Shown here: one piece after another, positions 1-30,118 of the stretch
How positions within the stretch are numbered: the first letter of the stretch is position 1
How the letters are laid out: every line of letters starts with the position of its first letter
Assembly (NCBI RefSeq): GCF_000143415.4
Contig: NW_003314300.1
Coordinates: 956,181 to 1,020,180, forward strand
Direction of reading: 5' to 3'
Source: Selaginella moellendorffii
Lineage: Eukaryota; Plantae; Lycopodiophyta
Length of the DNA stretch: 64,000 bases
Translations under genes and position numbers: made by a program
Notes under the pieces: generated by a model
What the model saw: the letters and a program-made list of their open reading frames with translations, nothing else
Databases searched by the model: none
Told to the model about the DNA's origin: nothing

Positions 1-509
1 TTAAGCCTTGGCTTTTCCTTGAAAAGTAATTTAGTCGTGAACAACATTAACTTTACCAAATGAAGAGTTAGTGATTGATATTGAAGATGTTTATGAGTAT
101 TACCACATATTCACTCCTCATATTACCACATCCACTCCTTGATGATATATTATCTATAGTTGAGTATTATTGAAGGATTAGTCTCAAATATTGAGTAAGG
201 TATCTTCGACTTTGGTTAGCTTAGTTGTTAAAGAGTTTTGAGTGGTGATTCACTCTTGCTTTCTTTTAGTTTTGTTTTGGTGTTGATCGCATTGAAGCAA
301 TGTGTTGTTGTTGACATTGTTGTTGTTAGGATTTAAATGAAATGGAATGCCTCTCCGTAGGATTGATATTTAGTTTTATTAGTCTCGATGGAGATAGTGT
401 TAGTGATTTGGCTGTAACTTTGTGTTATTGGCATTTGTGCATTTGTGCATTTGCTGATTAGCAACTATTTTAACATTCAAATGAGCTAAGTAGCAAATTG
501 AGTTAATTG

Positions 510-1690
510 TTAATTTGAGTTGGCCATGGTAGGGCTGAGATGGTGGTTTAGTGGAGCTGGTTATGGTAGTGTAGGCAGCAGGTTAGAGGCAGTCTTGCAT
601 CAGCATATGTGTTAGTGGCCGTGTCAGTCATGTGCAACAATGTTGTGGTGTGGGGATGTTCTTGTTGCTTACTGGGCTCCACTCTCACGCCAAAGACTCT
701 CATGGAATGAGTGGAACCCTTATCATGTGGAATATCCCAGGAATCAAGATGTTCTAGCTGTCTCTGCACGTTTGGAAGTTGGTATGTCATGTTCATCCCA
801 GTGATCCGGTATGCTCATGGGAAGAGTGTGGTCTGTAGTGTCTGGTTGGGGTGTCAGTCTTGATGGGGAGATTTTTGCGTAGTTTGGCTGTGTTACGTGG
901 GCTGAGGGTGCTTGTGAGAAGAATGCTTGGATGGCCTTGCGACGAGCTCTTGCCATTGAAGTTGGTTGCTGTGTTGTGTAGTTTGAGTTGGCCGTGGTAG
1001 AACTGAGGTGGTGGTGTAGTGGATCACAGGCAGTAACTCAAAGCAGTGGCAGTCTCCAGTGGTGTGCAACAATGTTGCAGTGTGGGGAGTAGCTCCTTCT
1101 CATCCTTCAAGCCACTCTTCGGCACCGATACTTACAAGAGGATTACACTGTTGCAATGTCCAAGTTATTGGTGGATGCAGCAAAGAGGTCCTGGACATGT
1201 ATATTCATCCCAGTGATATGGTATACTTGGCTCAAGAACTATCAGTACATGTTACATCCCAATATCTCACAAATCCATGCAGGGCGCATTCTGCTCATCC
1301 AAAGTGAAGCCGCATCACCTCATTCCCTTGGCAAGGCTTCACGTCCCAGCAAACGAAGGCAAAGCTGTAAATGCTCGAGACACTCATTCTCTTATGTAAT
1401 GGTGGTCAGATGGAGCAGTTCATGTAAATGTTGTCCGATGTTCAGAATGCTCAATGGTGTAGCTTGGCAGTCTTTGCATAGGCTAAGGGTGCCCAGTGAG
1501 GAGAATTCCTGATGGTCTGGTAATGATGAAAGTTGTGTGATATTCTTGTGGTCATGTTTAATGGAGTTTAAGTTGTTCATCGTCTGGAAGAGAAATTTTT
1601 TATGGCTTTGTGACCTGTAAAAGCTGGTGTAGTTTGAGTTCGTGCAGCTCCACTACACCGCCACCACAGCCCTCCACAGCCAACTCCCCC
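510..1690 (-). repeat. Three copies of a ~50-bp motif (two direct, one inverted) delimiting two diverged, decayed ORF-like units; probable retroelement relic
   Basis: GAGTTGGCCRTGGTAGRRCTGAGRTGGTGGTKTAGTGGA occurs at ~517-560 and ~985-1025, with a reverse-complement-like copy at ~1643-1686. The two units share the internal blocks GTGCAACAATGTTG..GTGTGGGGA and TTCATCCCAGTGAT..GGTAT. Confidence 0.55.
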
Positions 1691-2180
1691 AAGCTAGACT
1701 AGGGAAAAACCAACCTTGAAAAAAATATAATTAATAAAATTCAAGAGCAAAATTCTAGATGCCCATACTAGGGATTGATGGAGGATCATTCCTTAAAATG
1801 CCAAAATGCAGGAGAGAAGGAGAAATATAAAAAGAAAAAAAAAAGATACAATGGACTAGCTTTTGACCATGATCTAAATGCACAGTTGAAAACTCAACCC
1901 ACTAGTGTTTGTCTTATCCAATTCCCAAAATCATGGAGCTCCACTCATTATCGCCACGAGACAACAATGTTCTTTGAGCTAAACACAAAAAGACAAAATG
2001 TTTGTCTTCCCCGGCACCAAGGAAAAATAACAAGCAAAAAAAAAAAAAGAAAGATGAACATGAGAATGACACAAAGCTGCGCTCATCCTAAGTGCCACAA
2101 AGTCATAAAGGGAGAAGAAAAACAAGCACTCTTGATAGTTTTTCTGCTGGTGGTCAAGAGCTTTGGATTTCATAAAAGAA

Positions 2181-3191
2181 CTATGAACTAGCAAGATACT
2201 TTCTAAAAGCAATCAAAGATTGCACAATCAAGCATCTAGACCTCTTATCCAGCAGTGCATCACAAGGGTCTGATGAGCCGAACTTTCTGGGACGGAATTT
2301 CCTCACCTCAGTGACAAAAGTAGGCCTTTGACCTCGTCTCACGCAATGAGCCAAAGCCTTTGTCATGGTGACAAGGTAAAAGGTCGGAAGCGTACCCATG
2401 AAAACGATTCCTGGAAAAACCATCTGTTCCGACATATCTCCCAAGTCGTGGACTTTATGAAGCCTCTCGTTCTCCTGTACAGCAGCCACTAATTCCGCCA
2501 AAAGCTGAGCTTCAGGATGATGACCTTTGTGCTCCCTGTCGTTGGCCACCTCTGAGCTCTTATCCTCGACAACCAGCATTTTAACTGTGGTAGCTTCATC
2601 CTCGACTGTGTGATCCGGATTTGCTTCTGTCTTATGATGGGACATCCGCAACGGAATGGTGATTCTGCTCCTTACAGAGCCGCCATTCCTGTCGTAGTGG
2701 AAATACTCCAACAGCTTCTTGACTAAATCGTCCACACATGACTCGTGCCCCTTGTGCGTTTTTGTGGCAGAGATAATGTCTTTCACCAACAATTCTATGG
2801 CACGAGACCTGAAGGAGATCTCTTTGGTAGAGGAGACCAAGTGAGCCGATGTCATATCTAGATCCAAAAATTCCTGCCATGAGTTACCAAACACCGTGCA
2901 AGGGGGCTCTCCAAAGAAATCTTGAAACGAATTGACCTCAGTGACCTTGAACTTGAAAAATTTGAGTTCCCTCTTACTCCAAGAAGATCCACTGCGGAAT
3001 CCGATTTCTTCTACCTCAGCCTCGCTCTCATCATCCTCCGCCTCACCCTCGCCATGCTCTGCCTCTCCCTCACTATCATCTTCTGCCTCGCCCTTGCCAT
3101 CCTCTGGCTCTCTCTCGCCATCCTCTGCCTCTCCCTCCCTATCTTCTTCTCCCTCACCCTCGCTATCGTCTTCAGCCCTCTTCCTCTTCAT
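2181..3191 (-). CDS. Putative PD-(D/E)xK restriction-endonuclease-fold protein with an acidic repeat N-terminus (copy 1, intact); probably has an upstream exon (intron 3193-3242)
   Basis: 336-aa open frame with an NLS-like KRKR and E/D/G/A repeats, then SGSSW..RELKFF, ESCVDD, PD(HTV)..VVEDK, PEAQLLAELVAAVQ and FPGIVFMGTLPTFY. A 50-bp GTGAGT...TTCAG intron joins ORF 3239-3472 in frame (CT|C = Leu). Confidence 0.75.
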   Translation of the reverse strand: MKRKRAEDDSEGEGEEDREGEAEDGEREPEDGKGEAEDDSEGEAEHGEGEAEDDESEAEVEEIGFRSGSSWSKRELKFFKFKVTEVNSFQDFFGEPPCTVFGNSWQEFLDLDMTSAHLVSSTKEISFRSRAIELLVKDIISATKTHKGHESCVDDLVKKLLEYFHYDRNGGSVRSRITIPLRMSHHKTEANPDHTVEDEATTVKMLVVEDKSSEVANDREHKGHHPEAQLLAELVAAVQENERLHKVHDLGDMSEQMVFPGIVFMGTLPTFYLVTMTKALAHCVRRGQRPTFVTEVRKFRPRKFGSSDPCDALLDKRSRCLIVQSLIAFRKYLASS

Positions 3192-6020
3192 GCTGAATGA
3201 AACCCTAAGAATATTGACTTATAGCTGACCATTAAAACTCACAGGTCCGACATTGTAAGCTTGTCCAAGTCGCTCCTGGAGCTTTGGATGGTTTCATTCT
3301 GCTCGTTATGCAAATTCATAGGAGCTTTAAGGACAGGGACCACTATCCAGAGGCATTGCTGCGTTTCAGGAGAACCTTGTTCCTCGGGAAGAGGCTTCTT
3401 TTGCCTGGGATTGTGATGCGGAGCACGTTTTACCTGATGGGCCTGGCTTCTCAACGAGAGTCGACCAGTCAAGGGGTGTTAGGAACCTGGAGGCTTGGTG
3501 TGCTTGGCTGCTTGTGCCTGCAGGGAGTGTAGCCGAACCTTAAGTCCAGTCTAACCCGGGGAGGGGGATTGGGAGAGATTTGGGAATCCGTAGATGGATG
3601 GCTAACACTCCGTTGCTCGTGCAGTGAGTAGCTGAAACCAAGTAGGACCAAGTAGGAGCTGGTATAATAGGCGGGAACCTTGGCGAGAGAACTTAGCACA
3701 ATCCAAGGCAGTGTTGGTCGGATAGACGAGGTAAGCTGGCAAATTTGAAAGGAAAAATTTGTGGCTTACATTTTCATCTTGCCTTCACTATAACTAAATA
3801 CTAAACTCGCGTTATTGAGTCATACACTTGTCCAACATAAACATAATACCCCAGGTACGAGATAAAGGTTCATGGACAAGCACGAACTAAATGATCACTC
3901 GAATCTAACTCAACCGCAATAAGCTCACTAATGCATTTAGCCAACAGCTCTGAGCATGCCTTGAAGAGGCTAGTTATGCATAACCAACACTTAGTCGAAA
4001 CTAAAGTGAAGATCATGAGATGGACTCATATCAGTACACAACCTCCTTATAAACAAAGCTATAGTACAGGTACCAACATTTCAACTGCAAACAACTAAAT
4101 TGGACATCACTATTCTCAGCCAAGGTGCAAGGCCACCAAGACTAAGTCAAGATTAGTGAGAGCTCACTACTCTTATAAAGTCTTAATGAAATGCAAAGTG
4201 CAACCTGCCACCAAACATAACGCTATAGAAGAAAGGCACAAGGGTCACCCTTCATAAAAAAGTGCAATAGCCACTTTTTTACACCAACTCCAAACTCTAT
4301 CCAACTGAATTGTCTTAGCTTCAAAAGTTAGCATCCCTTTCGAGTTGCATCATACAAACTACTTATTAAAGTTTAAGCTAACCAAAGTCAACTCCAACCC
4401 TTTTATTAGTTTGTACTGGCTTACAAAAATGGAATGGTTTTCGAGCAAAGTGATTAATAGATCTGCCATTGGAAAAGTTTAAGAAAATTTGTGGAAATTT
4501 TCCATCTTAGAGAAAAAATGACTCTCAATCTAGGAATACAAATTTTCAAAACTCAACTAACTTCCTCCTACCTAAAACTTCACATAAGTTCACCTTAACA
4601 AAAATTCTCATGATCCAACAATATACTTAAGCATTGAATATCTTTTTTTTTTTTTTTTTGCTCATACTTCCGACATCTAACATTGATATCCTCAAAAATG
4701 CAAAATGAACATCTAAGGCTTGATCAAGAAGACCATATCTTCAGATATCTACATTGCACTAACACTCTTTTTTAATCACCTTCAAGATCCAATGTGAAAC
4801 AAAAACACTAGCAAAAAAAATGACATGGAAAATCAAGTGTTAAGGAAAATTTCTCATCACTCAAACAACAACATACCACTTTCACTAACACAAATGTTAG
4901 TGATGTCAATGCCTCAACTACACATCTTCTCCATCCAACAATCTACTCCAAGTGCTAACGGATCAACCTATGAGCTATAGCAAATGACAACCTTTTTATG
5001 CCATGTGATATATGCCATGTGTCATATGCTACATATCCAAAGTACAGTGGTGCAAAACTCAAGGTTCAGGACCTTGGGCCACTGAACAAAGAAACAGTGC
5101 CAAACTCCCAAGCATGGAGCCAAGGAGTGATGGAACTAGACCATGGAACAACTCCCGAGCATACAGCCCAAGGAGTGAAGGGACAGGAGCCCGAAGCAAC
5201 TTGGAACAGTCCTAGAGCAACCAACATCCCAATGCTAAGACTAACACGCAAAACGAAGCCAAATGAAGTTTGGCATTATTTTGACATACCGGTGGCCTAA
5301 TGCAAGGATATGGGTACTCCACCAGCTAGCATGGAATGGAACTTGGGCTTAAACACAAGCCAGACGCAGAACAAGGACAGGCACACAAGTGGGAGCTAGA
5401 CTATGCCTCAGGTTGGTCGGCCATGCCTGACCTACTCACTATCCCTACTATACATTTGGAACCCCCCATAGCCTCCCTTAGTATCAGGAGTTAGTCTCTG
5501 GGACAAGCTCGAAACTTACTAAATATGGAATATCCCTAGGTTGCGAATTTGGACATGGGACAAACACCATTGTGTTCAGGCCGATCTCTACATACTGTAG
5601 ATATGCCAAATAAGCAAATCTGGACACTTTCCATAAATAGCATTTGGGACCAAAATGAGACTAACACAAAGGGCATAATAGCGAAGGTGTTTGGCAGATA
5701 TGGTAAGCTATCATCTAGCGATATTGAGGGACTAGTCTCAATATGTGAAGGTTCTTGTCAAGTCAATGCAAGACAAAGCAAAAGAGAACTAACAAGTGGG
5801 GCCAAGTATGCTAAACTAAATAGACACTTAGGAATTCCTTCCTTATGCTCGTCTGGCCAAGTGTAGATGTAAAGTTCAGTTTACTAACACTTGAATAAGA
5901 GGGACTAATAAAGGGTCTAGCAATACCAACCTCCTGCCATCGTGGCAGTAAGGTAAGAGTGTCCGTAAGGATTAGCCGACATGTAACTTTCGATACCTGA
6001 AGTCACATTCATGACATCTT

Positions 6021-7054
6021 GTTAGCACCTTTGCAACTACTATTAGATACTTCCTTCTCAATCGAGTGGTGTTCTAGCATTCTTGTCTAGAGCGGATTCT
6101 TTTGGATAATGGTCCCACATTTATAGCTGAGGCATTTCATGTTTTGATGTCTCAGTTGGGGATACACTACACTTTCACGAGTGCTTATCATCCACAATTA
6201 GACGATCTAGTGGAATGGCTCATTCGGACATTTAAAGGGATGATTGGGAAGTATGTAAACTTTTAGCATTTCGATTGGGATGATTATTTGCCATCTTTTA
6301 GGTATACATATGTCACAGAGGTGCAGAGTTCTGTTGGTGCTTCACCATATAAACTTCTATATGGTCATGATCCAATATTACCAACAAAGTTGGGTTTACC
6401 TTTGTGATTGCCACAAGCTGCTGATGCTAGGTCGTGGGATCAATATTTGACGAGCATTCATCCACTTGTCCGAGCAGAGTTTGCCAAACACTTAGGCGGC
6501 GTATAAGTGGGACAACAACAGCGTTACAACTCCCATCATCGTCCACCTATAGAATACAAAGTGGATGATTTAGTGTTACTCCATTTTCCCCATCTTACGG
6601 TATGTGGTTTATCCAAGGGGCTCCTTGTGCAGTGGAAAAGACTATATCAGGTGTTGCAGCAAGTTGGACCATAAGTTTATAAAGTTTGGCATGACTCCAG
6701 CAGGCCGATCCTCCAAAAATTGTGCATGTGCAGTGGTTGAAATATTTTATACAAAGGGATCAGGAGCAGTTAATACCATCTATAGATCCGCCAATGCCTC
6801 CTCCTGACGTTCCTCCAGATCCCAGCCCATCTACAAGAGAATTCTAATAGTCTTCCATTATTCCAAGAGGAGGGGATGATGTGAGGGCCAAGTGTACAGC
6901 TACGATGCCGTATATTAATATTAGCATAGTGGGATTTTGGTAGCCGTCGGATTGGTTTCAATCTGAACCACTCACTCCTATAGATAAGCTAGGGTTTTGG
7001 GCTAATTAATATGCATATTTTTTGCATTCCCTTTCCATATTCCAAGCACCCACA
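6021..7054 (+). mobile_element. 5'-truncated Ty3/gypsy copy (integrase C-terminal half, PPT, 3' LTR 6880-7054); same family as 9222-14216
   Basis: 6021-6879 is collinear with ~13193-14041. PPT GAGGAGGGGATGA; LTR TGTGAG...CCCACA. Confidence 0.9.
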
Positions 7055-7205
7055 TATGTATATATATATACATATACATATACATATATATACATACACA
7101 CACATACATATACATATACATACATATATATATACATATATATATACATACATACATATACACACATACATACAAATACATATACACATACATACATATA
7201 TATAT
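7055..7205. repeat. Compound (TA)/(CA)/(TACA) microsatellite abutting the LTR end
   Basis: ~150 bp of tatatacatatacata-type sequence; it generates the spurious ORFs at 6989-7241. Confidence 0.95.
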
Positions 7206-7259
7206 TGGATTTGCTTTAGGAAGTGAGACATTAAAATTCATATTTTACAACTATGATAT

Positions 7260-8000
7260 TTGTAAAATGATGTAAATAATTCCTTCTAGCAATGCCAGAA
7301 TATAGGGCCTCTTGGAAGACTTAGAGATCTCTCCATAGCAGTGTAAATTGCAAGAGTTCTTTCACAATTTTCTGATTGAAAGTTTTATACATGATTAAAA
7401 AAGATGAAGATGTATTATCTTTATAAAAATTGTCTAATATAATGGCAAGTACAAACAAAATCATATATTTATTATTAAATCCTAAAACAATATCAGACCA
7501 AACATCTAATCTTTCACTTCCATCTATATACTACATCTATGGCATCAGAATTTGTAGGTTACCAAGTTTGTACTCTTTTTTTAATTGAGATTTAACCTCA
7601 TTATATATATTTCCAATGAAAAGAAAATCACTATCTTATGGCAAATATAGGAATGAGCCTAACTTAAAGATCAAAGCTCTGCCTTAAATTTAGCCTCAGC
7701 CCCCAGATTGATTGCTAGAAATATTGTTAGATTGAAGTTCTGTGTTTTTATATCTTTATAAAAGACTCTGGTATAATTCTAGCAAAATTTTGCAACAGAA
7801 AACCACCATGAAGTGTCAAGAATTAGCAAGAAAAACTAATGGCTTGAATAAAATTTTCTTGTATCAGTTTTGACTATTCTGGTTGAGATCTATTGTCATA
7901 CATTCTTGGACATCAGAACGTCAAATTCATCATCACATCATCAAATCCCAAGAACATCCTTAGATGTGGATATGGATCTCCTTAGAAACTCAATCTCATT
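7260..8000 (+). mobile_element. Possible decayed DNA-transposon (hAT-like) coding relic
   Basis: AT-rich broken frames. PRLIARNIVRLK near 7700 weakly resembles a hAT dimerization-domain segment; no TIR/TSD established. Confidence 0.2.
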
Positions 8001-14041: not shown

Positions 14042-14216
14042 TGTGAGGGCTAAGTGTACGGTTACGATGCTATATACTAATATTAGCGTAGTGGGATTTT
14101 GGTAGCCGTTGGATTGGTTTCAATCTGGACCACTCACTCCTGTATATAAGCTAGGGTTTTTGGGCTAATTAATATGCACATTTCTGTATTCCCTTTCCAT
14201 ATTCCAGGCACTCACA
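14042..14216 (+). repeat. 3' LTR (175 bp)
   Basis: Preceded by a purine tract and followed by TSD AAAG. Confidence 0.95.
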
Positions 14217-14233
14217 AAAGTTATTATTAAAAT

Positions 14234-15171
14234 TTATATTTCATATTGTACGAGAAATTTTTTAAAAGAAATAAAGCATTGTATGATAAAACATCTAGAA
14301 TCCTTATCGCATTTGAAGGGTCGGCACAGAGAAACTTTTTGGAACAGAATTTCTTCACCTTAGTGATAAATGTAGGCCTTTTACCTTCTTTGATGCAATC
14401 AGCCAAAGTTTTTCTCATGCTGATGAGATAAAACCAAGGAAGAGTTCCCACAAAAACGATTCCAGGAAATACAATATCTTCCAGTGGTACACGTCCCAGG
14501 TCATAGAGCTCATGTAGCCTTTCATTATCTTGTATTGCAGCTATGGATTCTGCCATGAGTTGAGCTTCAGGATTATGACTTCTGAGTTGAAGATGATCAG
14601 AGGTTTTGTCTTCAGTAGCTACCATGATCTTTACCATGGTCACTTCATCTTCCACACACAAATCTGAACTTACTTCTGGCCGTCTAACATCTGCAGTGGA
14701 ATGGTGACTCCAGTCCTTATAGAGGAACCATTCCTGTCATAATCTAAGAACTCCAACAACCTCTTACCCACATCGATGGCACAAGACTCACGTCTCCGGT
14801 GAGCTCTATTGGCAGAGATGATGTCCTTCACAAGTAATTCTACAACACAAGACCTAAATGAGATCTCTGCACTAGATGAGCTCAAGTAAACGTCTATAAG
14901 ATCCAGATCTAAAAACTCTTGAACTTCCTCTGCAAAGACAGTGCATGGTGGTTCACCAAAGAATTCCTCGAAGGACCTAACTTGCGTGACCCAATTCCCT
15001 GTCGACCCAAGAAGATCCCACTTCCCTGTTAGCCCGAGAAGATCCCACTTCCCTGTGAGCCCGAGAAGATCCCACTTTCCTGTCAGCCCGAGAAGTTCCC
15101 ACTTCCTTGCCCTCGTCTGACTCTTTCCTTTTCGTCCTTGCCATAGGGTTCCTTTCAGACTCTTTCGCCAT
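14234..15171 (-). pseudogene. Nuclease-like gene copy 2 (frameshifted pseudogene)
   Basis: ORF fragments 14977-15171, 14670-14885 and 14227-14661 are homologous to 2181-3191. Small frameshifting deletions relative to copy 3. Confidence 0.85.
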
Positions 15172-15544
15172 AGGGTTCTTTGTTTCTTTCAGGGTTGATA
15201 CGTTTTATACGTGGCAAGGGCAATTTCTTTTTTAGGCACAATCCGTAATCTGAGCTCTAGTGGCGAGGCCGGTGTTTCGCCTGGAGCAATCGCGCAGTGC
15301 CTCGAGTCTGTCAGTAGTCTGTCACTCGCGAAGATGGCTTTTTGCTAGGAACTCATTGATCGAGGGGAACTGAACTCCCTTCAATGCTGCAGCTTTACGT
15401 CCCAGCGAGGGATTCTCAATCGAATGCCGTGTGAGATATTCTCACCTGGATGGTTGCGGCACTTGCCCACTCAGGGCAACTGTAGCGCTTGTTTGGCGGA
15501 AAACCAACTCAGAAATCTATGAGCACTCTCAGGCTGGCAAAGTT

Positions 15545-16480
15545 TCGTTAATGCAGAACATTTGATGTGGTTCCACAATGATAAAAGTTTTTAGAACACT
15601 CTTCACGGATGACTCCCTTTGCTATGATCATGCAAACGTATCCGCCTTGGGATGGTGCTTTTCTTTTGAGTGTTTTCCAGGTACATAAACTCAGGTTTAT
15701 GTGACAGCGCGACAATGTGATCCAAACTTCTTGATCGAGAAAAGCAGTGGAAGGCTGCGATCGATCATCCGCAGGGGATTGCTGTGCATAGCAATGGAGT
15801 TGAGACGAAAAGCAAGCTGGAAAGTAAAACCAAGCTTCAGGAGGGACGCAAGCGTTCTGGAAAGCACTATTTTGCTCATTTTTGCAGAGGGGACTTGCGT
15901 GAACAAGGAGGACAATGTGATGTTCAAGCAGGTTCTTGATTTCGTAGTTTCTCCAGGTAGTTCTTATTTCCTTGCTCTTGATTTTGCGGATTGCATTCGA
16001 ACTGGATTTCACTGTCTGCCCCGTTTCTCTGAAAGTAAAACAAGATAATTGTCCACGCTAAGTTTATACTTTTCATCTCGATTGACTTTCAGTTTTTTTT
16101 TTTCGTTTAGCTGAAGCTGATGTCGTCCTGGGTAGTCGTTTGCGATGTCTGGTATGTGGAGCCACAAATGAACGATGCACCAATAGGATTCTCGGAGAAG
16201 CATGCAAAGAGCACTCTTCTTATTTATATTCTATATTCCTTTCAGAGTCTGCGATAGCGAAACGAGCTGAAGTTACGAAAGTCGCTTGAAATACTACGTC
16301 CAATCTCGAAACTCACAGAAGAAGAACAGCTCAACGTGGTGCCATTGGAAAATGTAAGATTCTTGCTTTGTTTTCTCTAAATTTTGCGTGAAAGCCTGTA
16401 GCCTACGCGTTTTTCCTCCACGGGCCAGAAACTCCCCTAGACCATGCTAAGAAGATTACGAACAAAGACAAATTCATGGA
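15545..16480 (+). pseudogene. Unit X: unidentified, apparently spliced, decayed gene-like repeat (copy 1)
   Basis: Plus-strand splice-like junctions (ttttgcag, cgtttag, ctttcag, aat|gtaag); stops in all frames; repeated at 20806-21512 and 25555-26520, and inverted at 8568-8810. Confidence 0.45.
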
Positions 16481-17077
16481 ATGATCGACGTGGTTTTTTT
16501 CTTGTTTTTCTTTTTATTTCGAAGAAAGCCAATGCCGAATAAAAAATCTCCGCTCCTCTGGGCCGGCTTGGACCAGATGAGAAATGAAAGCGACGAAGAA
16601 CCGCACGCGCTTGCGACGTTTGTGTGTTCATTCTTCGTTTGAGTCAAGCACACGAGTCAGGCACACGAGTCAAGCACCGTTTGATAATGGGAATCGAAAT
16701 GCTGACGGCCTTGGCCAAACTCTTTGTACAACGCGCAAGAATGCCACCATACCGCCTTGCTATGGCGCTTGTAAGAAATTTTGTTTTTGGTCCTGACGTA
16801 ACATGGTTTGGTCCCGGCATTATGGCTTCCTAGGCAATCTGACGCGCCAGTCCTGTCACACCAGACATTGCGTCAATTCTGCCGTGTGCTGACCGAGGAG
16901 CTCTTCGTCACTACGGCTAGAGGCGACTAGGGCGATGATCGATCGATCGATCGTTCTGTGACCGAAATATCGCGACGAAAATTTCAAGACTATCCTTCGC
17001 TACCATGCCTTTATTCTAAATAACAGGCTATTTTTAGGTCGCAAAGAAATTCTAGCACAGCGACAGCAACCACATCA

Positions 17078-17770
17078 ATGGATGGAGGAGGAGAAGATGG
17101 ATCACCTCCTTCCCCTGACGGAGGAGGAGAAGATGGATCACCTCCTCTTCCCCCTGACGCTGGCGGAGCCGATGGATCACCTCCTCCCCCTGACGGAGGA
17201 GGAGAAGATGGATCACCTCCTCCTCCCCCTGACGCTGGCGGAGCCGATGGATCACCTCCTCCCCCTGACGGAGGAGGAGAAGATGGATCACCTCCTCCTC
17301 CCCCTGACGCTGGCGGAGCCGATGGATCACCTCCTCCTCCCCTCCTGGGCCAGGGTCCGTACGCCCCTGATGCTGGCGGAGTCGATCCTCCCCGCCTGCG
17401 GAGTCCGTACGCCCCTGATGCTGGCGGAGCCGATGGATCACCTCCTCCTCCCCGCCTGGGCCTGGGTCCGTACGCCCCTGATGCTGGCGGAGCCGATGGA
17501 TCACCTCCTCCTCCCCGCCTGGGCCTGGGTCCTCCCCGCCTGGGCCTGGGTCCGTACGCCCCTGATGCTGGCGGAGCCGATGGATCACCTCGTCTTCCAG
17601 GAGAAGATGGATCACCTCCTCCCCCTGACGCTGGCGGAGCCGATGGATCACCTCCTCCTCCCCCTGACGCTGGCGGAGCCGATGGATCACCTCCTCCTCC
17701 CCCTGACGCTGGCGGAGCCGATGGATCATCCGGCGGTGGAGCTCCTCCTCCTCCCCCTGACGCTGGCGCG
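17078..17770 (+). repeat. Coding minisatellite (33-36-bp units encoding GSPPPP(P)DAGGAD / DGGGED / [11 protein letters not shown])
   Basis: Repeated cctcctccccctgacgctggcggagccgatggatca. Confidence 0.95.
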
Positions 17771-20013
17771 AACATTCTTCCATCTCCTCCTGGCACACCT
17801 CCTGCTCCAACGACTAGCGACAACAGCGGCGGCGGCAGTAGCTCGATTACCGCTGGCGCGATTGTGGGGATTGCCGTGGCCGGGATTTTGATCTTGATCG
17901 TGCTCGCGCTGGTGGTTTGCTGCCTCCGAAGGAAGTCCAAGAGGAAGTATAAACGAGATGACCACGCGTATGGATCAGGGCAATGCAAAGCTGGTAAAGT
18001 TTCTTCCTCTCTCTTTTGCTTGCGTGCTTTTCTTCATCTTTGGTTTTAGCTATCTCAAGCTATCTCTTTTTGCTTGAGTGCTTTGCTTCTTAATAATGTT
18101 CGCCAGCTTTAGGGAATGCAGGCGACATGAATTCTAAAAGTTTTCTTGCGTCTTCCAGAGATGCATGAAGCCGGCAGGACACCAAGACCAGATCATTATG
18201 ACCACAAGCCTCCTCCGCCACCACCGCCGCCGCCGCCTCACTATAATTACGCGTATGGGTCTCCAGTTCCGCCACCACCTCCGCCGCCACCACCGCACTA
18301 CAGTAATTCGGGAAGACAGGATTCCTGGGGGCAACCACCACCGCCCGGTATGAGCCCGAGCATGGGTAGCTCCAGGTCGTTGTTCACGCAACCACCACCG
18401 CCCGGTATGAGCCCGATCATCGGTAGCTCCAGGTCGTTGTTCACGCAACCACCACCGCCCGGTATGAGCCCGAGCATGGGTAGCTCCAGGTCGTTGTTCA
18501 CTTACGAGGAACTTGAGGCAGCGACTGCTGGATTCTCCAGGGCCAATCTTCTCGGCGAGGGTGGGTTTGGATGTGTATACAAGGGATTTCTCCATGGTGG
18601 TCAAGTTGTAGCTGTGAAGCAGCTTAGAGATGGAAGCAGGCAAGGAGAGCGTGAGTTTCGAGCTGAGGTTGAGATTATTAGCAGAGTTCATCACAGGCAT
18701 CTGGTTTCGCTGGTTGGATACTGCATTGAGGATGCTCAGAGGCTGCTGGTTTACGATTTCGTGCCGAATGGAACGCTGGAGCATCACCTGCACGGTACAA
18801 GTTTTTGTCCGTGTTTTTCCTTGTTCTCAGTCTCGTTTTCTCTCTTGTTTTTTCAGGTGAAGGTAGAACCGTGATGGATTGGCCAACGAGATTGAAAATA
18901 GCTTCTGGTTCTGCTCGTGGACTAGCATATCTTCATGAAGACTGTAAGATCTCTATCTCTCCGTTGGAACTTAATCTAAAAGTCATTCGTTCTTGCAGGC
19001 CATCCTCGAATCATTCATCGGGACATAAAGTCGTCTAACATTCTTTTGGATAACAATTTTGACGCTCAGGTTTGTTGTTACATATTTGCTCACTTTCTTT
19101 CAATTGTAACGCTTGTCCATTACAGGTCTCTGACTTTGGGCTTGCGAAGCTCGCTTCTGACACTTACACACACGTCACTACTCGAGTTATGGGAACCTTC
19201 GGGTAAGGACATAACCAACCAAATATATCAGTTTCCCATATGAATTTTTCAAACTTCCAGGTACCTTGCGCCTGAGTACGCCTCCACAGGAAAACTGACG
19301 GAGAAGTCAGACGTGTACTCCTTTGGAGTCGTCCTACTGGAACTTATAACGGGAAGGAGGCCTGTAGATACCACGCAACCTGTGGGAAAAGACAGCTTGG
19401 TCGAATGGGTGAGTCTTTGCAAAACCTCATCCTTGGACATGCTAAAACTTATTGCCTCTTTCAGGCTCGACCATACCTCATGCAGGCTATCGAGAATGGC
19501 GACCTCGGTGGCGTAGTCGACGAAAGACTAGCAAACTACAACGAGAACGAGATGCTACGAATGGTCGAGGCAGCTGCAGCCTGCGTTCGACACTCAGCCA
19601 GAGAACGCCCAAGGATGGCAGAGGTTTGTTTGCATCTTTTGTTTTCTCGAGCAACCACTAAACTCCTTGCATTTTTCTTTCAGGTTGTCCCCGCTCTAAA
19701 AAGCGATATCTCCGACCTCAACCAAGGAGTAAAGCCAGGCCACAACTCGAACTTCACGAGTGCGGACTACAATAGCAACCAATACGTCTCAGACATGAAA
19801 AGGTTCCAAAAGGTGGTGTTTGGAAGCCAAGAACACGGGAGCTCCGAACACAGTGGCCCGCCGACGAGCGATCCCTCGGTGTCGAGCAGTGAAGGGATGA
19901 GCAGCATGGAGATGGAGAGGCGGCGGGCTGGGTTGCTTTGGAGCTCGGACACGACGAGTTCCAGTGAGATCAATGCCAACACCAACAGCAGTAATCGTCT
20001 CAATGGCCGGTAA
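17078..20013 (+). CDS. PERK: PERK-family proline-rich receptor-like kinase, copy A (multi-exon)
   Basis: No signal peptide; Pro-rich N-terminus; [25 protein letters not shown]; [39 protein letters not shown]. Exon 1 is 17078-17993 and exon 2 starts at 18159 in phase. Confidence 0.92.
18331..18502 (+). repeat. 57-bp in-frame triplication (QPPPPGMSP[SM/II]GSSRSLFT) in the PERK A juxtamembrane region
   Basis: Three tandem copies; a single copy in PERK B. Confidence 0.92.
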
Positions 20014-20094
20014 AATTTCGAGAAGAAATATCACAGGGAAGAAGAGAATATTTTTTTAAGTTACTACGTTGTCTCGTTTGTATAATATATTTGA

Positions 20095-22148: not shown

Positions 22149-24334
22149 CAAGTGTTGGCTCCATCTTTCGTTCCACTCTGTTACTTTTGGCTCACTTATT
22201 CAAAAGTTTAGATTCCGCTCTATAATTATCTTATAATAAATCACTATATAATAAAGGGTGAAACCACGTGTGCTAGAAGGTATGAAACACCTCTATTGGA
22301 TAACTTGTCAAGGGGCTCTGATCTTTGTTCCAACCATATCTTAGCCTCATAAGCATTCCAAAACCATTTGCACCTATCATCAATAAGAAAGCCTTTAACC
22401 TAGCTAATCCAAAAAAATAAAAGACAATTGATCTTGTAAAAAATGGAGCAATGGCTTACTTGCTTTTATATGATCTACTAATTTTAAAATAGATCAATTT
22501 GCCTGCCATACCACACTGAATACAAAAGATAATTTTGCCCCATTTTCTACCACAAGCAACACAAACCTTATACCCAAGTTATCCAATGTTTGTAACAATC
22601 TCTTTTAAATCCAAACTCACATCTATAGACATATTGTAATTGTAGGCTTCTGAAGTCTATTTGCTTGCTTTAGATACCATGATCAAGGCTTGGACTTTCT
22701 ATACATAAATTTTATAGTTTTATAAGAGTGACTTAAGTAATTGCCCTATAAAACTAAAGCTCTATAAGCAAAAGAATCAATCTCTCACAATGCATCTTTC
22801 ATAGTCCATATCCATTTGCATAAAAAAGACTAAAGCAAAACAAATGTTGCTAGCAAAATATTATAAATTTCAGAGTATATATTTTTCATATGTAATACTA
22901 TTCATTGCCTAGCATAAGCTTCTTAGTTGGCAAAGTTTATTTGATCCATATATTATCAATAATCTCTTACTAGATCTCTAGGGTAGCATTTGAATCCACA
23001 CAGCTTTTCTACCACTAATTGTGATGTTCAGGCTCTGCATATAGCAAATATTAAGTTTGGAGGAAATGCCTTTAAAACTATAAAACACATCATGATATCC
23101 TCACAACCTACATTGTCACCATTTGCAACATCTCACTATTGTCCATTCCAAGCAACTTGCATATAAGGGGCAAACTTTGCCCCAATATCCTTCCAAATCA
23201 AAGTTGTAAGATGACTATGAATGATCTGATGACTTTTACAATCAATTATATGTTCACATCCTGATAAATTACAAATTAGATATTGAGTTTGAGCTGGAGC
23301 AAGTAAACTAAAGATTATGAGTTTAGCCAAGAGTTAAAAGCATATATATGCTCGGGACTCTTTCTCCTGCCATGAAGTGCTGATATTAAGCTTAAGAACT
23401 ATGTCATAGAAGCTCAACTTGAGGCAGCAAGTAGAAAACACAATGTGGTTATTCATGGAGGCAATTGGCAAAAGAAAGTGCAATAATAACATGCCCAGCT
23501 TGCTTAAGACTGGACAATATTTTAGCTAGAGCTAACAATCTTGTTTACTGTCCCACTACCAAGAAATTCCCAGTTCAAACATTGACCTTAAGCTCATATG
23601 GAGATTGACATGTACCTTTGGAATCTGATCACCAACTTTGTTTAGCACTCTTCACAAGCCAACACCTTAATGCATTTTTGTGTGGTCAAAATTTAAATTT
23701 TAATTCACAACTTTGTTTGCAAATCCATGGAGCACCATCAATCTTGCATGAATCCCCATGCCTAAATCAAGAACTTTAACCTTCAGTCCAAGCCATCGAG
23801 AATTGAGGGAGTGGCCCTATTTAGTGGGAGTGGAATTAAGATTGAGGAAGCAAAAAGTGCCATTTTGACTCTTGCCCAAATGTGCATGTCACATGTGTCA
23901 AATTTCTCACAACACAACAATCATTGGCCAAAACAAAACCTTATCAAAATATTTTAATAAGACATGGTTAAAGAAATAACTTTTTGACAAAGTACCCCTC
24001 CATCCAATGGCTGCCATTTAGATGTAATGGCCTGAAAAGTTGGGCAACTCATCTCTCTTTAGTGCCAGGTATAAGAAGTATTTATTAGTTAAACTAACTA
24101 TAATTTCCACATACTAATTATTGCCAACATTTTTGGTTTGCTTAAGCATAAGGGGAGTGAGTGGATATACATAAATAATTTATAAATTTTTCTTAGTATA
24201 TTCTTGTTTATTCTACCATCAAATGGAATTAATCTTTTTTTATAAATTATAAACATGTTTATAATTATAAACTTCAATTTGATTAATTATATTAATAAAT
24301 ACAAATTATTAAAATAAAAATTTATTATTAAAAT

Positions 24335-25405
24335 CTATATTTCATATTGTACGAGAAACTTTTTAAAAGAAATAAGGCATTGTATGATAAAACGTCTAGA
24401 ATCCTTAACAAACAATGCATCTGAAGGGTCGGCACAGAGAAACTTTTTGGAACGGAATTTCTTCACCTTAGTGATAAATGTAGGCCTTTTACCTTCTTTG
24501 ACGCAATCAGCCAAAGTTTTTCTCATGCTGATGAGATAAAACCAAGGAAGAGTTCCCACAAAAACGATTCCAGGAAATACAATACCTTCCAGTGGTACAT
24601 GTAGGTCATAGAGCTCATGTAGCCTTTCATTATCTTGTATTGCAGCTATGGATTCTGCCATGAGTTGAGCTTCAGGATTATCTTGAAGATGATCAGAGGT
24701 TATGTCTTCATCAGAGGTTTTGTCTTCAGTAGCTACCATGATCTTTACCATGGTCACTTCATCTTCCACACACAAATCTGAACTTACTTCCTTTTGGCCG
24801 TCTAACATCTGCAGTGGAATGGTGACCCTAGTCCTTATAGAGGAACCATTCCTGTCATAATCTAAGAACTCCAACAACCTCTTACCCACATCGATGGCAC
24901 AAGACTCACGTCTCCGGTGAGCTCTATTGGCAGAGATGATGTCCTTCACAAGTAATTCTACAACACGAGACCTAAATGAGATCTCTGCACTAGATGAGCT
25001 CAAGTAAACGTCTATAAGATCCAGATCTAAAAACTCTTGAACCTGCAAAGACAGTGCATGGTGGTTCACCAAAGAATTCCTCGAAGGACCTAACTTGCGT
25101 GATCTCGAATTTAAAGAAACCCAATTCCCTGTCGACCCAAGAAGATCCCACTTCCCTGTGAGCCCGAGAAGATCCCACTTCCCTGTCAGCCCGAGAAGTT
25201 CCCACTTCCTTGCCATAGGGTTCCTTTCAGACTCTTTCCTCTTCCTCTTTGCCATAGGGTTCTTTGCCATAGGGTTCCTTTCAGGGTTGACACGTTTTAT
25301 ACGTGGCAAGGGCAATTTCTTTTTTAGGCACAAAATCTGCACTCCTTTTGCGGAGGTGGTGTTTCGCCTGAGTCTGTCAATCGAGGGGAACTGAACCCCC
25401 TTCAA
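24335..25405 (-). CDS. Nuclease-like gene copy 3; core domain open, N-terminal segment read out of frame between two compensating frameshifts
   Basis: The core VQEFLDLD..ESCAID..SSDLCV..TEDK..PEAQLMAESIAAIQ..PGIVFVGTLPWFY is uninterrupted. The homologous GSSWVDRELGFFKF..FFGEPPC segment lies in another frame (ORF 24990-25205). Confidence 0.6.
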   Translation of the reverse strand: MKGVQFPSIDRLRRNTTSAKGVQILCLKKKLPLPRIKRVNPERNPMAKNPMAKRKRKESERNPMARKWELLGLTGKWDLLGLTGKWDLLGSTGNWVSLNSRSRKLGPSRNSLVNHHALSLQVQEFLDLDLIDVYLSSSSAEISFRSRVVELLVKDIISANRAHRRRESCAIDVGKRLLEFLDYDRNGSSIRTRVTIPLQMLDGQKEVSSDLCVEDEVTMVKIMVATEDKTSDEDITSDHLQDNPEAQLMAESIAAIQDNERLHELYDLHVPLEGIVFPGIVFVGTLPWFYLISMRKTLADCVKEGKRPTFITKVKKFRSKKFLCADPSDALFVKDSRRFIIQCLISFKKFLVQYEI

Positions 25406-25554
25406 TGCTGCAGCTTTACGTCCCAGCGAGGGATTCTCAATCGAATGCCGTGTGAAATATTCTCACCTGGCACTTGCCCACTCAGGGCAACTGTAGCGCT
25501 TGTTTGGCGGAAAACCAACTCAGAAATCTCTTAGCACTCTCAGGCTGGCAAAGT

Positions 25555-26520
25555 TTCGTTAATGCAGAACATTTGATGTGGTTCCACAATGATAAAAGTT
25601 TTTAGAACACTCTTCACGGATGACTCCCTTTTCTATGATCATGCAAAAGTATCCAGCTTGGGATGGTGTCTTCTATAAATCTTCTCTTTTGAGTGTTTTC
25701 TAAGTACATAAACTCAGGTTTATGTGAGACCGCGACAATTTGTACCAAGCTTCTTGGTCGAGAAAAGCAGTGGAAGGCTGTGATTGATCATCCGCAGGCG
25801 TAGCAATGGATTTGAAACGAAAAGCAAGCTGGAAAGTAAAACCAAGCTTCGGAAGGGACACAAGCGATCCGGAAAGCACTATTTTGCTCATTTTTGCAGA
25901 GGGGACTTGCGTAAACAAGGAGGACATTGTGATGTTCAAGCAGGTTCTTGACTTCGTAGTTTCTCCAGGCAGTTCTTATTTCCTTGCGCTCGATTCTGCA
26001 GATTGCATTCGAACTGGATTTCACTGTCTGCCCCGTTGCTCTCAAAGTAAAACAAGATAATTGTCCACGCTAAGTCTATACTTTTCATCTCGATTGACTT
26101 TAAGCTTTTTTTTTCGTTTAGCTGAGGCTGATGACATCCTGGGTAGTCGTTTGCGATGTCTGGTATGTGGAGCCACAAACAAACGATGCACCAATAGGAT
26201 TCTCGGAGAAGCATGCAAAGAGAACTCTTCTTCGACATAACTTTATATTTATATTCCTTTCAGAGTCTGCGATAGCGAAACGAGCTAAAGTTACGAAAGT
26301 CGCTTTGAAATACTAACGTCCAAGCTCGAAACTCACAGAAGAAGAATAACAACTCAACGTGGTGCCATTGGAAAATGTAAGATTCTTGCTTTGTTTTGTC
26401 GAAGTTTTGCGTGGAAAGCCTGTAGCTTACGCGTTTTTCCTCCACGGGCCAGAGAAACTCCCCTAGATCATGCTAAGAAGATTAAGAACAAAGACAAATC
26501 CATGGAATGATCGACGGGGT
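25555..26520 (+). repeat. Unit X copy in duplication B
   Basis: Collinear with 15545-16480. Confidence 0.85.
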
Positions 26521-27464
26521 ACTTTTTATTGCGTTTTTTTTTTGTTTCGATGAAAGAAGAAAAAATCTCCGCTCCTCTCATGTGCAATAATGGGCCGGCT
26601 TGGACCATTGAAATGGGAGATCATGAGCGCGTATTAAGAGAAGTAGCTCTCCAACTTATAGTGGTGGTGGTCACTGTTCTTCACGCGAGCTTGCGACGTT
26701 TGTGTGTTTGTTCTCGTAGCAGTGGATCGCGACACATGTGTCAAGGACCGTTTGATAATGGGGAATCGAAATGGTGACGGCCTTGTCGTGTTGTCCCATG
26801 GCCACTGTGGCCCAACCTCTTCGTACAACGCGCAAGAATGCCACCGTACGGCCTTGCTAAGCCAACTAAATAACAGGCGCTTGTAAGAAAAAAAAAAATT
26901 TTTGTTCCTGACATGACATGGACGAATCGTAGCTAGTTATTGTTTTCTTTTGTGGCCTGCAAGGTCAGTGGATGCCAGCCGGTGCTTGCCACGTGGCCGC
27001 TATGTCCACGTCATGCGGCCCGCCCGGCATTATGGCTTCCCTGGTTTGCAAGGCAATCTAGTTCGCTGGAATGTGACGCGCTAGTCCTGTCACCAAAAAG
27101 TAAGAGTCTGGGATGCATATTCCGTCTGCCAGGTGGCAAGCAGCGTCAATTCTGCCGTGTGCTAACCATGGCGGCTGGCTGCATGAGAGGGAAATCAAGC
27201 CGGCTTTGCTGAGGAGCTCTTCGTCGCCACTAGGGCTAGAGGCGACTAGAGATAGGGCGACGATCGATTCCTCCCCTTTCCACGCATAGATGGATCGATC
27301 GGGCGCTCTGGTAGGTATCACGCGGATCTGATCTAGGCTAGATCGTACATTTGCGGGGAAGGGACAGGGATTGCGATCGATCGATCGTTCTGTGACCGAA
27401 ATATCGCGGCTAGAACAGGCTATTTGCAGGGTCGCAAAGAAATTCTAGCACAGGGGCAGCAAGA

Positions 27465-28258
27465 ATGTCTGCGCCAGCGCCGAGTCCTCCAGCCGGGGGA
27501 GGAGGAGGAGCTCCACCGCCGGCTGTTCCATCGGCTCCAGCTCCAGTGCCGCCAGCCTCACCTCCTCCTCCAGTAGCTCCCGTTGTTCCTTCCTCTCCGC
27601 CTCCTACTACTGGTCCTCCAGTCGTTTTACCACAGCCTGTGGTTCCATCTCCTCCTCCTCCTCCTGTTCTTCCTGGCACACCTCCTGCTCCTCCGGCCTC
27701 TCCTCCGCCGGCTATAGTCAATCCTCCGCAAAATCCAGCTCCAGGCACTCCATCCGCGCCAACACCGCCCATTCCATCAACGCCAACGCCTCCTTCTCGA
27801 GGATCTCCTCCGAGAACACCAAGTACTGGCAATGGTGGTGGAAACCCAGCGACTAGCGATAGCGGCGGCGGCGGCGGCAATAGCCCGATTACCACTGGCG
27901 CGATTGTGGGGATTGCCGCGGCCGGGATTTTGATCTTGATCGTGCTCGCGCTGGTGGTTTGCTGCCTCCGAAGGAAGCCCAAGAGGAAGTATAGACGAGA
28001 TGACCACGAGTATGGATCCGGGCAATACAAAGCTGGTAAAGTTTCTTCCTCTCTCTTTTGCTTGCGTGCTTTTCTTCATCTTTGTTTTTCAAGCTATCTC
28101 TTTTTGCATGAGTGCTTTTCTTCTTGATAATGTTCCACTCGGCTTTTGCGAGCTTTAGGGAATGCAGGCGACATGTTCTAAAAGTTTTCTTGCGTGTTCC
28201 AGAGATGTATGAAGCTGGCAGGAGACCAAGACCAGATCATTATGGCCACAAGCCTCCT

Positions 28259-28289
<31 letters not shown>

Positions 28290-29991
28290 CTCACAAGCAT
28301 TACGCGTATGGCTCTCCAGTTCCGCCACCACCTCCGCCACCTCCGCCGCCACCACCGCACTATAGCAGCTCGGGAAGCCAGGATTCCTGGAGGCCAGTTC
28401 CGCCACCACCACCACCGCCCGGTATGAGCCCGGGCATGGGTAGCTCCAGGTCGTGGTTCACGTACGAGGAACTTGAGGCAGCGACTGCTGGATTCTCCAG
28501 GGCCAATCTTCTCGGCGAGGGTGGTTTTGGCTGTGTATACAAGGGATTTTTACCTGGTGGACAGGTTGTGGCTGTGAAGCAGCTTAAAGTTGGAAGCGGC
28601 CAAGGAGAGCGTGAGTTTCGAGCCGAGGTTGAGATTATCAGCAGAGTTCATCACAGGCATCTAGTGTCGCTGGTTGGATACTGCATTGCTGATGCTCAGA
28701 GGCTGCTGGTTTACGATTTCGTGCCAAATGGAACGCTGGAGCATCACCTGCACGGTACAAGTTTTTGTCCGTGTTTTTCCTTGTTCTCAGTCTCGTTTTC
28801 TCTCTTGTTTCTATCAGGTAAAGGTAGACCCGTGATGGATTGGCCAACGAGATTGAAAATAGCTTCTGGTTCTGCTCGTGGACTAGCATATCTTCATGAA
28901 GACTGTAAGATTTCTATCTCTCCGTTGGAACTTAATCTAAAAGTCATTCGTTCTTGCAGGCCATCCTCGAATCATTCATCGGGACATAAAGTCGTCTAAC
29001 ATTCTTTTGGATAATAATTTTGACGCTCAGGTTTGTTGTTACATATTTGCTCACTTGCTTTCAATTGTAACGCTTGTCCATTACAGGTCTCTGACTTTGG
29101 GCTTGCGAAGCTCGCTTCTGACACTTACACACATGTCACTACTCGAGTTATGGGAACCTTCGGGTAAGGACATTACCAACCAAATATATCATTTTCCCAT
29201 ATGAATTTTTCAAACTTCCAGATACCTTGCGCCTGAGTACGCCTCTACAGGAAAACTGACGGAGAAGTCAGACGTGTACTCCTTTGGAGTCGTCCTACTG
29301 GAACTTATAACGGGAAGGAGGCCTGTAGATACCACGCAACGTGTGGGAGACGAAAGCTTGGTCGAATGGGTGAGTCTTTGCAAAAGCTCATCCCTGGACT
29401 TTCTAAAACTTATTGCCTCTTTCAGGCACGACCATACCTCACGCAGGCTATCGAGAATGGCGACCTCGACGGCATAGTCGACGAAAGACTAGCAAACTAC
29501 AACGAGAACGAGATGCTACGAATGGTCGAGGCGGCTGCAGCCTGCGTTCGACACTCAGCCAGCAAACGCCCAAGGATGGCACAGGTTTGTTTGCCTCTTT
29601 GTTTTCTCGAGCAACTACTAAACTCCTCGCATTCTTCTTTCAGGTTGTCCGCGCTCTAGAAAGCGATGGAGCAATCTCCGACCTCAACCAAGGAGTAAAG
29701 CCAGGCCACAGCTCGAACTTCACGAGCGCGGACTACGATAGCAACCAGTACGCCTCGGACATGAAAAGGTTCCGAAAGGCGGTGTTTGGAAGCCAAGAAC
29801 ACGGGAGCTCCGAGCACAGTGGCCCGCCGACGAGCGAGTATGGGATGAATCCCTCGGTGTCGAGCAGCGAAGGGATGAGCAGCATGGAGATGGAGAGGCG
29901 GCGGGCCGGGTTGCTCAGGAGCTCGGACACGACGAGCTCCAGCGAGATTAATGCCAACACCAACACCAATGATCGTCTCAATGGCCGGTAA
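27465..29991 (+). CDS. PERK: PERK-family proline-rich receptor-like kinase, copy B (likely ancestral form)
   Basis: Typical S/A/P-rich ectodomain, TM, complete kinase motifs ([23 protein letters not shown]); same intron positions as copy A. Confidence 0.95.
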
Positions 29992-30118
29992 AGTTTCGAA
30001 AGGAAAGATCACAGGGAAGAAGAAAAGATTTTTCTACAAGAACTTTTTGATCATACGACGTTGTCTCGTTTGTACAATATATTTTATCGACCTTGGAGAA
30101 TTTTTAGGGTTCTTGGGA

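Follow-up and report, generated by a model that had tools for sequence, protein, structure and literature searches.

Proteins of the PD-(D/E)xK superfamily share a core order of helices and strands in which a glutamate lies on the first core helix, an acidic residue at the start of a strand, a (D/E)xK motif at the end of the next strand and a glutamine on the following helix. Examples are TT1808 (1wdj) and 3ot2 of the DUF820/Uma2 type, 9y1l, DrdV, BsaXI, BpuSI, RecE, AdnAB and the Shedu protein SduA. Zhang and colleagues are said to have described, in 2016, restriction endonuclease (REase) toxin domains in the Crinkler or CR-type effectors of oomycetes, chytrids and Rhizophagus. In a review, the mitoribosomal proteins mL37 and mL65 (mS30) have been called 'repurposed endonucleases' that form a pseudo-dimer. 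Here, we describe a gene with the same core layout at positions 2181-3191 of a 64,000-nucleotide stretch of the lycophyte Selaginella moellendorffii (assembly GCF_000143415.4, contig NW_003314300.1, positions 956,181 to 1,020,180 of the forward strand; the whole stretch is called the window). An earlier note on this DNA, written from its letters, had proposed a PD-(D/E)xK restriction-endonuclease fold for the encoded protein. Structure prediction with AlphaFold2 (AF2) and structural comparison with Foldseek bore this out, giving a high-confidence model and matches that are nearly all nucleases of the fold. The gene, here called copy 1 (c1), and its relatives are a new sequence family of the superfamily, because the fold and motif of the superfamily are present and no curated family matches. 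We favour, with moderate confidence, the reading that c1 is a predicted active nuclease from a family of fungi and of elements resembling nucleocytoplasmic large DNA viruses (NCLDV), gained horizontally by the plant and amplified locally.

The family may already have been encountered in this plant. The 'EFJ10148' family comprises 23 Selaginella copies of unknown function with homologues in a few fungi and in one chlorovirus, ATCV NE-JV-2; it was judged likely to be horizontally acquired, had no viral neighbours and was assigned no fold (Maumus et al., 2014, PMC4083422). The traits reported there match those of the present family. The two may be the same, on a circumstantial agreement of described traits rather than a comparison of accession and alignment, and the horizontal-transfer story may already be published (Maumus et al., 2014). 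The chlorovirus homologue was not recovered in the fold search of BFVD or in the scans of IMG/VR. A literature search found no earlier fold assignment for the family.

The 336-residue open reading frame (ORF) that had been reported as intact is present on the minus strand and matches the GenBank model SELMODRAFT_418717. Its parts, in window positions and with the evidence in brackets, are as follows:
2181..3191, minus strand: c1, an intact single-exon gene of 336 amino acids (aa) plus stop, SELMODRAFT_418717 (ORF list, model match, invariant residues).
3177..3191, minus strand: basic N-terminal patch MKRKR, resembling a nuclear localisation signal (ORF sequence and family comparison).
3009..3176, minus strand: acidic E/D/G-rich tract, aa ~6-61, specific to copy 1 (Tandem Repeats Finder, TRF, and copy comparison).
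2817..3008, minus strand: conserved N-terminal subdomain, aa 62-125, with W71, L76, F92, F93 and G94 (column conservation, AF2).
2184..2816, minus strand: core with the PD-(D/E)xK fold and C-terminal helices, aa 126-336 (AF2, Foldseek, conservation).

c1 starts with ATG, runs in one reading frame with zero internal stops and keeps all catalytic and structural invariants of the family. SELMODRAFT_418717 (Selaginella moellendorffii) is 100% identical to the ORF across 88% of the length and departs from it only at the 3' end (window 2181-2290), where a predicted intron puts a spliced exon in place of the last ~40 residues. A single exon is the better reading because the unspliced ORF continues into residues conserved across the family (D311, R319 and F329), and the deposited model is probably mis-spliced. 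The features quoted earlier from the letters (KRKR, the acidic tract, PD...EDK and the motifs that follow) were all found in the ORF. In residue numbering, the motifs are the MKRKR N-terminus, NPD(193)H ... VE(209)DK(211), PEAQ(229)LLAELVAAVQ and PGIVFMGTLPTFY.

The conserved body of c1, ~275 aa long, follows the basic N-terminus and the acidic tract. Patches of lysine and arginine like MKRKR also precede the conserved body in the paralogues and in fungal and viral members. Judged from sequence, the patch is a family-wide feature and not a plant-specific addition; it would be compatible with nuclear import, and the protein may be nuclear. The acidic tract is encoded by a tandem DNA repeat (periods 21/45/66 nt, 3014-3173, TRF), copies 2 and 3 have a different 27-nt repeat at the equivalent place, and the tract was absent from the fungal and viral members compared. 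It is a copy-specific appendage of c1. The suggestion that it serves as a conserved inhibitor, mimicking DNA in cis, is unlikely because the tract is a copy-specific minisatellite.

An AF2 model built from a 118-sequence alignment reached a predicted local distance difference test score (pLDDT) of 93.4 and a predicted template modelling score (pTM) of 0.91; the model from a 5-sequence alignment, at pLDDT 37.6, was unusable. In ORF numbering, the elements are a helix at 150-163, strands at 186-190, 194-197 and 203-209, a helix at 226-247 and strands at 256-265 and 268-277. The alpha-beta-beta-beta-alpha-beta core that defines the superfamily was found by AF2 and Foldseek together. The core helix begins at E150, a strand begins at D193, the next strand ends with E209-x-K211 and the helix after it carries Q229; as modelled, this order is the canonical PD-(D/E)xK layout. 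The shares of these residues among the 118 members are 78% for E150, 82% for D193, 74% for E209, 78% for K211 and 83% for Q229. A complete D...(E/D)xK motif was found in 68 of the 118 representatives and in 79 of the 102 members on fetched loci. The most invariant positions are structural (W71, F92, A232, G266, F271, Y272, G287 and T294), and G266..F271-Y272, G287 and T294 are further features of the core. Unlike the known PD-(D/E)xK families, the present one has a C-terminal helical extension and an extra conserved N-terminal subdomain (W71...F92-F93-G94). The latter is modelled at pLDDT >90 as short helices and one strand, and its columns hold W in 90%, F in 92% and F in 88% of the 118 members.

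In Foldseek searches of the PDB, the top matches were two mitoribosome chains (5 and s), with E values of 1e-5 to 5e-4 and TM scores on the query of 0.40-0.53 over ~300 columns; from chain lengths and the literature, and not from the tool label, we infer that they are mL37 and mL65. Next came a putative restriction endonuclease domain protein (9y1l), DUF820/TT1808, nuclease domains from DrdV, BsaXI and BpuSI, then SduA, RecE, AdnAB and CidB, and Foldseek probabilities to PD-(D/E)xK proteins rose to 0.96-0.97. Against the viral predicted structures of BFVD, phage Exo VIII, PD-(D/E)XK and Cas4 nucleases were matched, all weakly. The family, or at least its Selaginella branch, could on this evidence be a non-catalytic structural or nucleic-acid-binding protein on a nuclease scaffold, like mL37/mL65. 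The mitoribosome chains lead the structural matches by two orders of magnitude, and the published picture of mL37/mL65 as repurposed endonucleases in a pseudo-dimer fits such a role. The complete triad is missing in 42% of the diverse representatives. Three open Selaginella paralogues, u2 and u3 (directly upstream of the window) and P0019, have lost the catalytic residues (D193G, E209I, K211R, Q229E) and another, P0009, lacks E209, all with the structural invariants kept. Two further points weigh against the catalytic reading of c1: bona fide nucleases are matched with modest E values, 6e-3 at best, the strongest matches being non-catalytic proteins, and residue placement was read from secondary-structure elements without model coordinates, so that it describes order and not clustering in three dimensions.

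The catalytic residues are present in c1, in copies 2 and 3 (c2 and c3) and in u1, another upstream copy. That c1 and most members (58-79%) keep the full triad together with E150 and Q229 is hard to explain without catalysis, and the family has no sequence-level Pfam link to any mitoribosomal family. mL37/mL65 differ from the family in being ~390 aa long, animal-specific and non-catalytic, in a comparison made by structure and by Pfam and PDB searches rather than by direct sequence alignment. Neither search linked mitoribosomal families to c1, and the likeness is structural only. mL37 and mL65 are a pair of related nuclease-fold proteins, and Selaginella too has neighbouring copies that are triad-intact and triad-lost. 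A non-catalytic family or branch is unlikely, though by no means negligible. We return to the reading of c1 as an enzyme: it is predicted to be an active Mg2+-dependent nuclease, of DNA or RNA, because it keeps every residue used by the fold for metal-dependent phosphodiester cleavage.

Searches by sequence did not connect the family to any described one. c1 gave only chance Pfam matches (E>0.1), none of the 118 diverse members matched any Pfam model, and no PDB chain was matched by sequence, profile search included. In this the family is unlike the PD-(D/E)xK families in Pfam and the PDB, and its known range is fungi, virus-like elements and Selaginella. It resembles the Crinkler or CR-type effectors, as these are reported, in its REase-fold modules, its multigene expansion in early-diverging fungi and its candidacy for nuclear-acting toxins. 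Unlike theirs, its N-terminus is a short basic patch followed by a distinct small subdomain. None of the 118 members matched the Crinkler N-terminal header (PF20147), and the family is not a Crinkler-type effector because this header domain is absent. On one fungal-type metagenome contig, a weak match to the Crinkler N-terminal domain was seen in a small gene (L007:16111-16302) that is distinct from the family member lying ~5 kb away.

The size of the family was measured by searching 1.84 billion cluster representatives exhaustively with a profile, a search that returns results without taxon names. At E<=1e-3 there were 1,080 representatives, of which 479 reached E<=1e-10. The taxonomic range rests on this unlabelled search and on ~20 named relatives among the matches listed; listed relatives have profile E values of 1e-122 to 1e-20, far beyond chance. 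All named non-plant members are fungal. They come from chytrids (Clydaea, Boothiomyces), Zoopagomycota (Conidiobolus), Mucoromycota (Cunninghamella, Podila) and Basidiomycota (Abortiporus, Russula), and share 25-34% identity with c1. Among the ~20 named relatives, Selaginella is the only plant. The earlier note had not recognised the motifs from angiosperms and had expected relatives in basidiomycetes, glomeromycetes and giant viruses. Giant-virus-like relatives and some basidiomycetes were found, whereas the fungal members belong mainly to early-diverging lineages, with no glomeromycete among the named matches. A pattern-limited scan of the genomes of 185,579 prokaryotic species gave no relative. 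A metagenome scan yielded at least 126 loci, mostly from soil judging by contig names, which fall into two context classes, A and B. Class B contigs (47-54% GC) have sparse long ORFs and resemble fungal genomic DNA.

Class A contigs are gene-dense and AT-rich (mostly 32-42% GC, two at 45-53%). They carry a delta-like PolB, a fused capping enzyme/methyltransferase, SNF2-type and XPB/ResIII-type helicases, Rpb2-like genes of 765-924 aa and half-length Rpb1 genes. The virus-like gene set is spread over contigs L021, L014, L015, L023, L027, L032, L001 and L006. On L021, Rpb1 is split into separate genes for its N-half and C-half, at 1734-2684 (+) and 5726-7744 (-). Small APH/Pkinase-like kinases recur beside the nuclease-fold genes, and the family occurs in arrays, the largest of which, on L005/L006, has 10 members within 20 kb. 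A split RP1 together with this gene set has been described as the signature of a viral lineage endogenised in moss (Maumus et al., 2014). Class A contigs share PolB, SNF2 helicase, capping enzyme and RPB2 with these endogenous NCLDV-like regions of Physcomitrella, and L021 shares the split RP1, a likeness of described gene sets and not of sequences (PMC4083422). In contrast to the moss regions, the Selaginella locus keeps only the nuclease-fold family over ~80 kb.

The best non-plant matches to c1 lie on L013 (41% identity), L001/L002 (39%) and L014 (36%). L001, L002 and L014 are class A contigs; L013, which is 4.4 kb long, holds two family members and comes from the sample that also yielded the class A contig L015. 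One IMG/VR contig encodes a full-length member (36% identity), accompanied by a MutS-HNH fusion, dUTPase, MYND-finger protein, globin and chitinase. MutS-HNH is typical of Mimiviridae-like viruses. Further IMG/VR scans with the family alignment, the viral member and P0023 as queries gave no additional contig. A 26 kb contig in the assembly of the chytrid Clydaea vesicula (L003, GCA_027604065.1, JADGJW010000262.1) carries one family member and several large ORFs without a Pfam match. Its PolB is 38% identical to class A PolB and its member is 46-47% identical to class A members, and the contig may represent a virus-like element, either integrated or co-assembled. For the Rpb2 and helicase fragments of the virus-like contigs, the best matches are archaeal structures; an archaeal origin of these contigs was rejected because of their delta-like PolB, their eukaryote/virus-type capping enzyme and the chytrid link. 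The 21 kb contig L002 (ENA ERZ26273096, ctg159432_1x_c) has 1x coverage and a name ending in '_c' (possibly circular). Several family members lie in its 11.6 kb direct repeat (99.8% identity), and the contig is perhaps an artefact of assembly, or else a tandem or circular element.

This distribution could also be that of an ancient eukaryotic gene, inherited vertically and lost nearly everywhere but in fungi and lycophytes, with the viral copies as captures from hosts. The family spans all major fungal lineages sampled and is rare in catalogued viral contigs (one IMG/VR contig), as such a history would predict. However, many independent losses would be needed across plants and other eukaryotes, the Selaginella copies are closer to members on virus-like contigs (39-41%) than to most fungal ones (25-34%), and the gene is intronless in a plant genome. 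We regard vertical descent as very improbable. A horizontal origin of the Selaginella copies, proposed from the letters before these relatives were found, is likely, and with fungal and giant-virus-like relatives no other reading is as economical. A neighbour-joining tree places all Selaginella sequences in one small clade whose next neighbours are class A and chytrid members. The grouping of the Selaginella copies suggests that they diverged inside the plant.

Several observations tell against this account of origin and past selection. Bootstrap support for the monophyly of the Selaginella copies and for their sister group is weak (17/200). As to whether the closest homologues are viral, the best non-plant matches do lie on virus-like contigs and the one IMG/VR contig, but the tree is poorly supported and fungal genomic members are numerous. 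Most metagenomic members lie in a fungal-type genomic context, which makes transfer from fungus to plant with no virus involved equally possible. In the parts scanned, the virus-like contigs showed no capsid gene. Just ~20 relatives carry names, and other plants are possible among the unnamed representatives. Past purifying selection, read earlier from the conserved motifs, is borne out by a ratio of nonsynonymous to synonymous divergence (dN/dS) of 0.23 between c1 and c3, computed like the other ratios on in-frame pieces only, at a dS of 1.3 that is near saturation. The recent duplicates c2 and c3 are near-neutral (dN/dS 0.81 at dS 0.07), and three of the six local copies are broken. Selection that acted in the donors, ahead of separate insertions, could also have produced the low ratio, an alternative raised by Maumus et al. 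(2014, PMC4083422), who noted that selection footprints may predate insertion.

The local cluster holds at least six family copies in ~41 kb of the window and the DNA upstream: c1 is intact, three copies are broken and two are intact but without catalytic residues. The three copies in 25 kb counted by the earlier note were an undercount and two of the three are broken, yet both paralogues it named are real and keep the motifs. The further features of the cluster inside the window are:
14227..15171 (outer bounds), minus strand: c2, a broken paralogue with catalytic motifs still legible (piece frames).
24335..25405, minus strand: c3, a paralogue in two frames with one frameshift relative to c1 (piece frames, models).
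14200..20021, no strand: first unit of a segmental duplication (~10 kb), with c2 and kinase-like exons (direct repeats).
24300..29999, no strand: second unit of the segmental duplication (~10 kb), with c3 (direct repeats).

The pieces of c2 occupy three reading frames, without stops inside them, and c2 therefore has at least two frameshifts. The core domain of c3 lies in one open frame with the triad intact, and the GenBank model SELMODRAFT_418720 spans the core alone. This model ends in unrelated residues, like the 3' end of the c1 model. Both c2 and c3 retain the D...ExK, PEAQ and G-T-x-P-x-F-Y motifs. Their DNA identity to c1 is low, as noticed earlier (67-71%, limited to the ORF), compared with 97-98% between c2 and c3. 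The duplication is recorded in direct repeats D3-D6, D10, D12-D14, D16 and D17, which are 93-98% identical at a spacing of ~10 kb; a Pkinase match lies in its first unit at 18146-18874. The DNA directly upstream (L010, scaffold GL377604.1), whose last 1,281 bases equal window 1-1281, contains u1, u2 and u3 on the opposite strand. u1 is broken (three frames, one stop) with E150/D193/E209-K211 present. u2 and u3 are open over the core, at L010:4840-5721 and L010:7953-8771. Their subtype without catalytic residues is found again on another scaffold, where SELMODRAFT_429820/429821 form a tandem pair. The family includes seven named gene models of Selaginella, spread over at least three scaffolds.

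All of these copies, c1 included, could be functionless remnants of foreign DNA, with c1 open through chance or youth. Such decay would agree with the broken half of the local copies, with the c2-c3 ratio, with a cluster set among Ty3/gypsy fragments and segmental duplications, and with selection footprints that may predate insertion (Maumus et al., PMC4083422). Yet c1, at a dS of ~1.3 and 56% amino-acid identity to c3, is still an open frame of 336 codons with 13 of 13 checked invariants; u2 and u3 are open too, and the Selaginella copies cluster together, which suggests divergence within the plant. That c1 is a relic is quite unlikely. A transposon-encoded nuclease would be expected inside a repeated unit with terminal repeats or beside other transposon proteins; the similarity of c1 to c2 and c3 is limited to the ORF, and the fungal members stand alone among ordinary genes, in a comparison that included no systematic search for terminal repeats.

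The rest of the window is of plant type, with protein kinases, an ACT-domain ACR gene and Ty3/gypsy fragments. A plant-type protein kinase at 32723-34012 (-) (Pkinase E 4e-60) and the ACT-domain ACR-like gene at 39634-40614 (+) place the window in a plant genomic context. Fungal contamination of the assembly was ruled out, the copies being continuous, on a 1.7 Mb scaffold, with plant genes and retrotransposons. When 438 translated segments from 15 virus-like loci were compared with the window and L010 (~80 kb), matches were found only at family copies, besides weak generic kinase similarity. The locus is thus not a surviving viral island: an integrated giant-virus island was ruled out, with family copies as the only detectable gene of such elements. 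A Ty3/gypsy fragment at 12217-14009 (+), with RNase H, an integrase zinc-binding domain and a C-terminal ORF, adjoins c2 and is 87-88% identical to the Ty3/gypsy piece at 6126-6997. Short flank repeats (8920-9394 against 14073-14216 and 24046-24320) suggest that retroelement insertions reshaped the cluster. A nine-copy tandem array of 36/39 nt at 17087-17739 lies within overlapping long ORFs on both strands (17011-18049); these have no Pfam match, and the array is repeated in the second duplication unit. The last part of the window (62001-64000) is extremely AT-rich (GC 0.227).

The history that we favour would run as follows. The natural range of the family would be Fungi and NCLDV-like virus-like elements, and Selaginella most likely gained one copy horizontally. 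Local tandem and segmental duplication would have followed, with birth-and-death turnover. The donor side would be best represented today by the AT-rich, gene-dense virus-like contigs linked to a chytrid assembly. The intact paralogues without catalytic residues suggest that part of the family is non-catalytic, and these copies may be partners of active subunits. Such active/inactive pairing is conceivable because triad-intact and triad-lost open paralogues coexist and the PD-(D/E)xK fold is habitually dimeric. A role in the plant as toxin, defence effector or selfish element is speculation. With low confidence, a bolder picture may be drawn in which the family marks an undescribed lineage of fungus-associated, NCLDV-related elements, kin to the one endogenised in moss, and in which Selaginella domesticated a cooperating pair of active and dead nuclease paralogues that parallels the mL37/mL65 pseudo-dimer or even shares ancestry with it. 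The traits of such a lineage would be a delta-like PolB, a capping enzyme, two helicase types, a split Rpb1, small kinases and tandem nuclease arrays.

The analysis supplies a fold and a testable catalytic hypothesis for more than 1,000 representative proteins that have no Pfam model and no sequence-related solved structure. With mL37 and mL65 as top structural neighbours, the question is raised whether those proteins derive from this family. The gene-dense virus-like contigs, one of them tied to a chytrid assembly, carry arrays of the nuclease-fold gene beside a split RNA polymerase and could be living relatives of the elements endogenised in moss. For Selaginella, a land-plant gene cluster with fungal and giant-virus-like relatives fills in some detail of the sparse traces that large DNA viruses, or fungus-to-plant transfer, are known to have left in early land plants.

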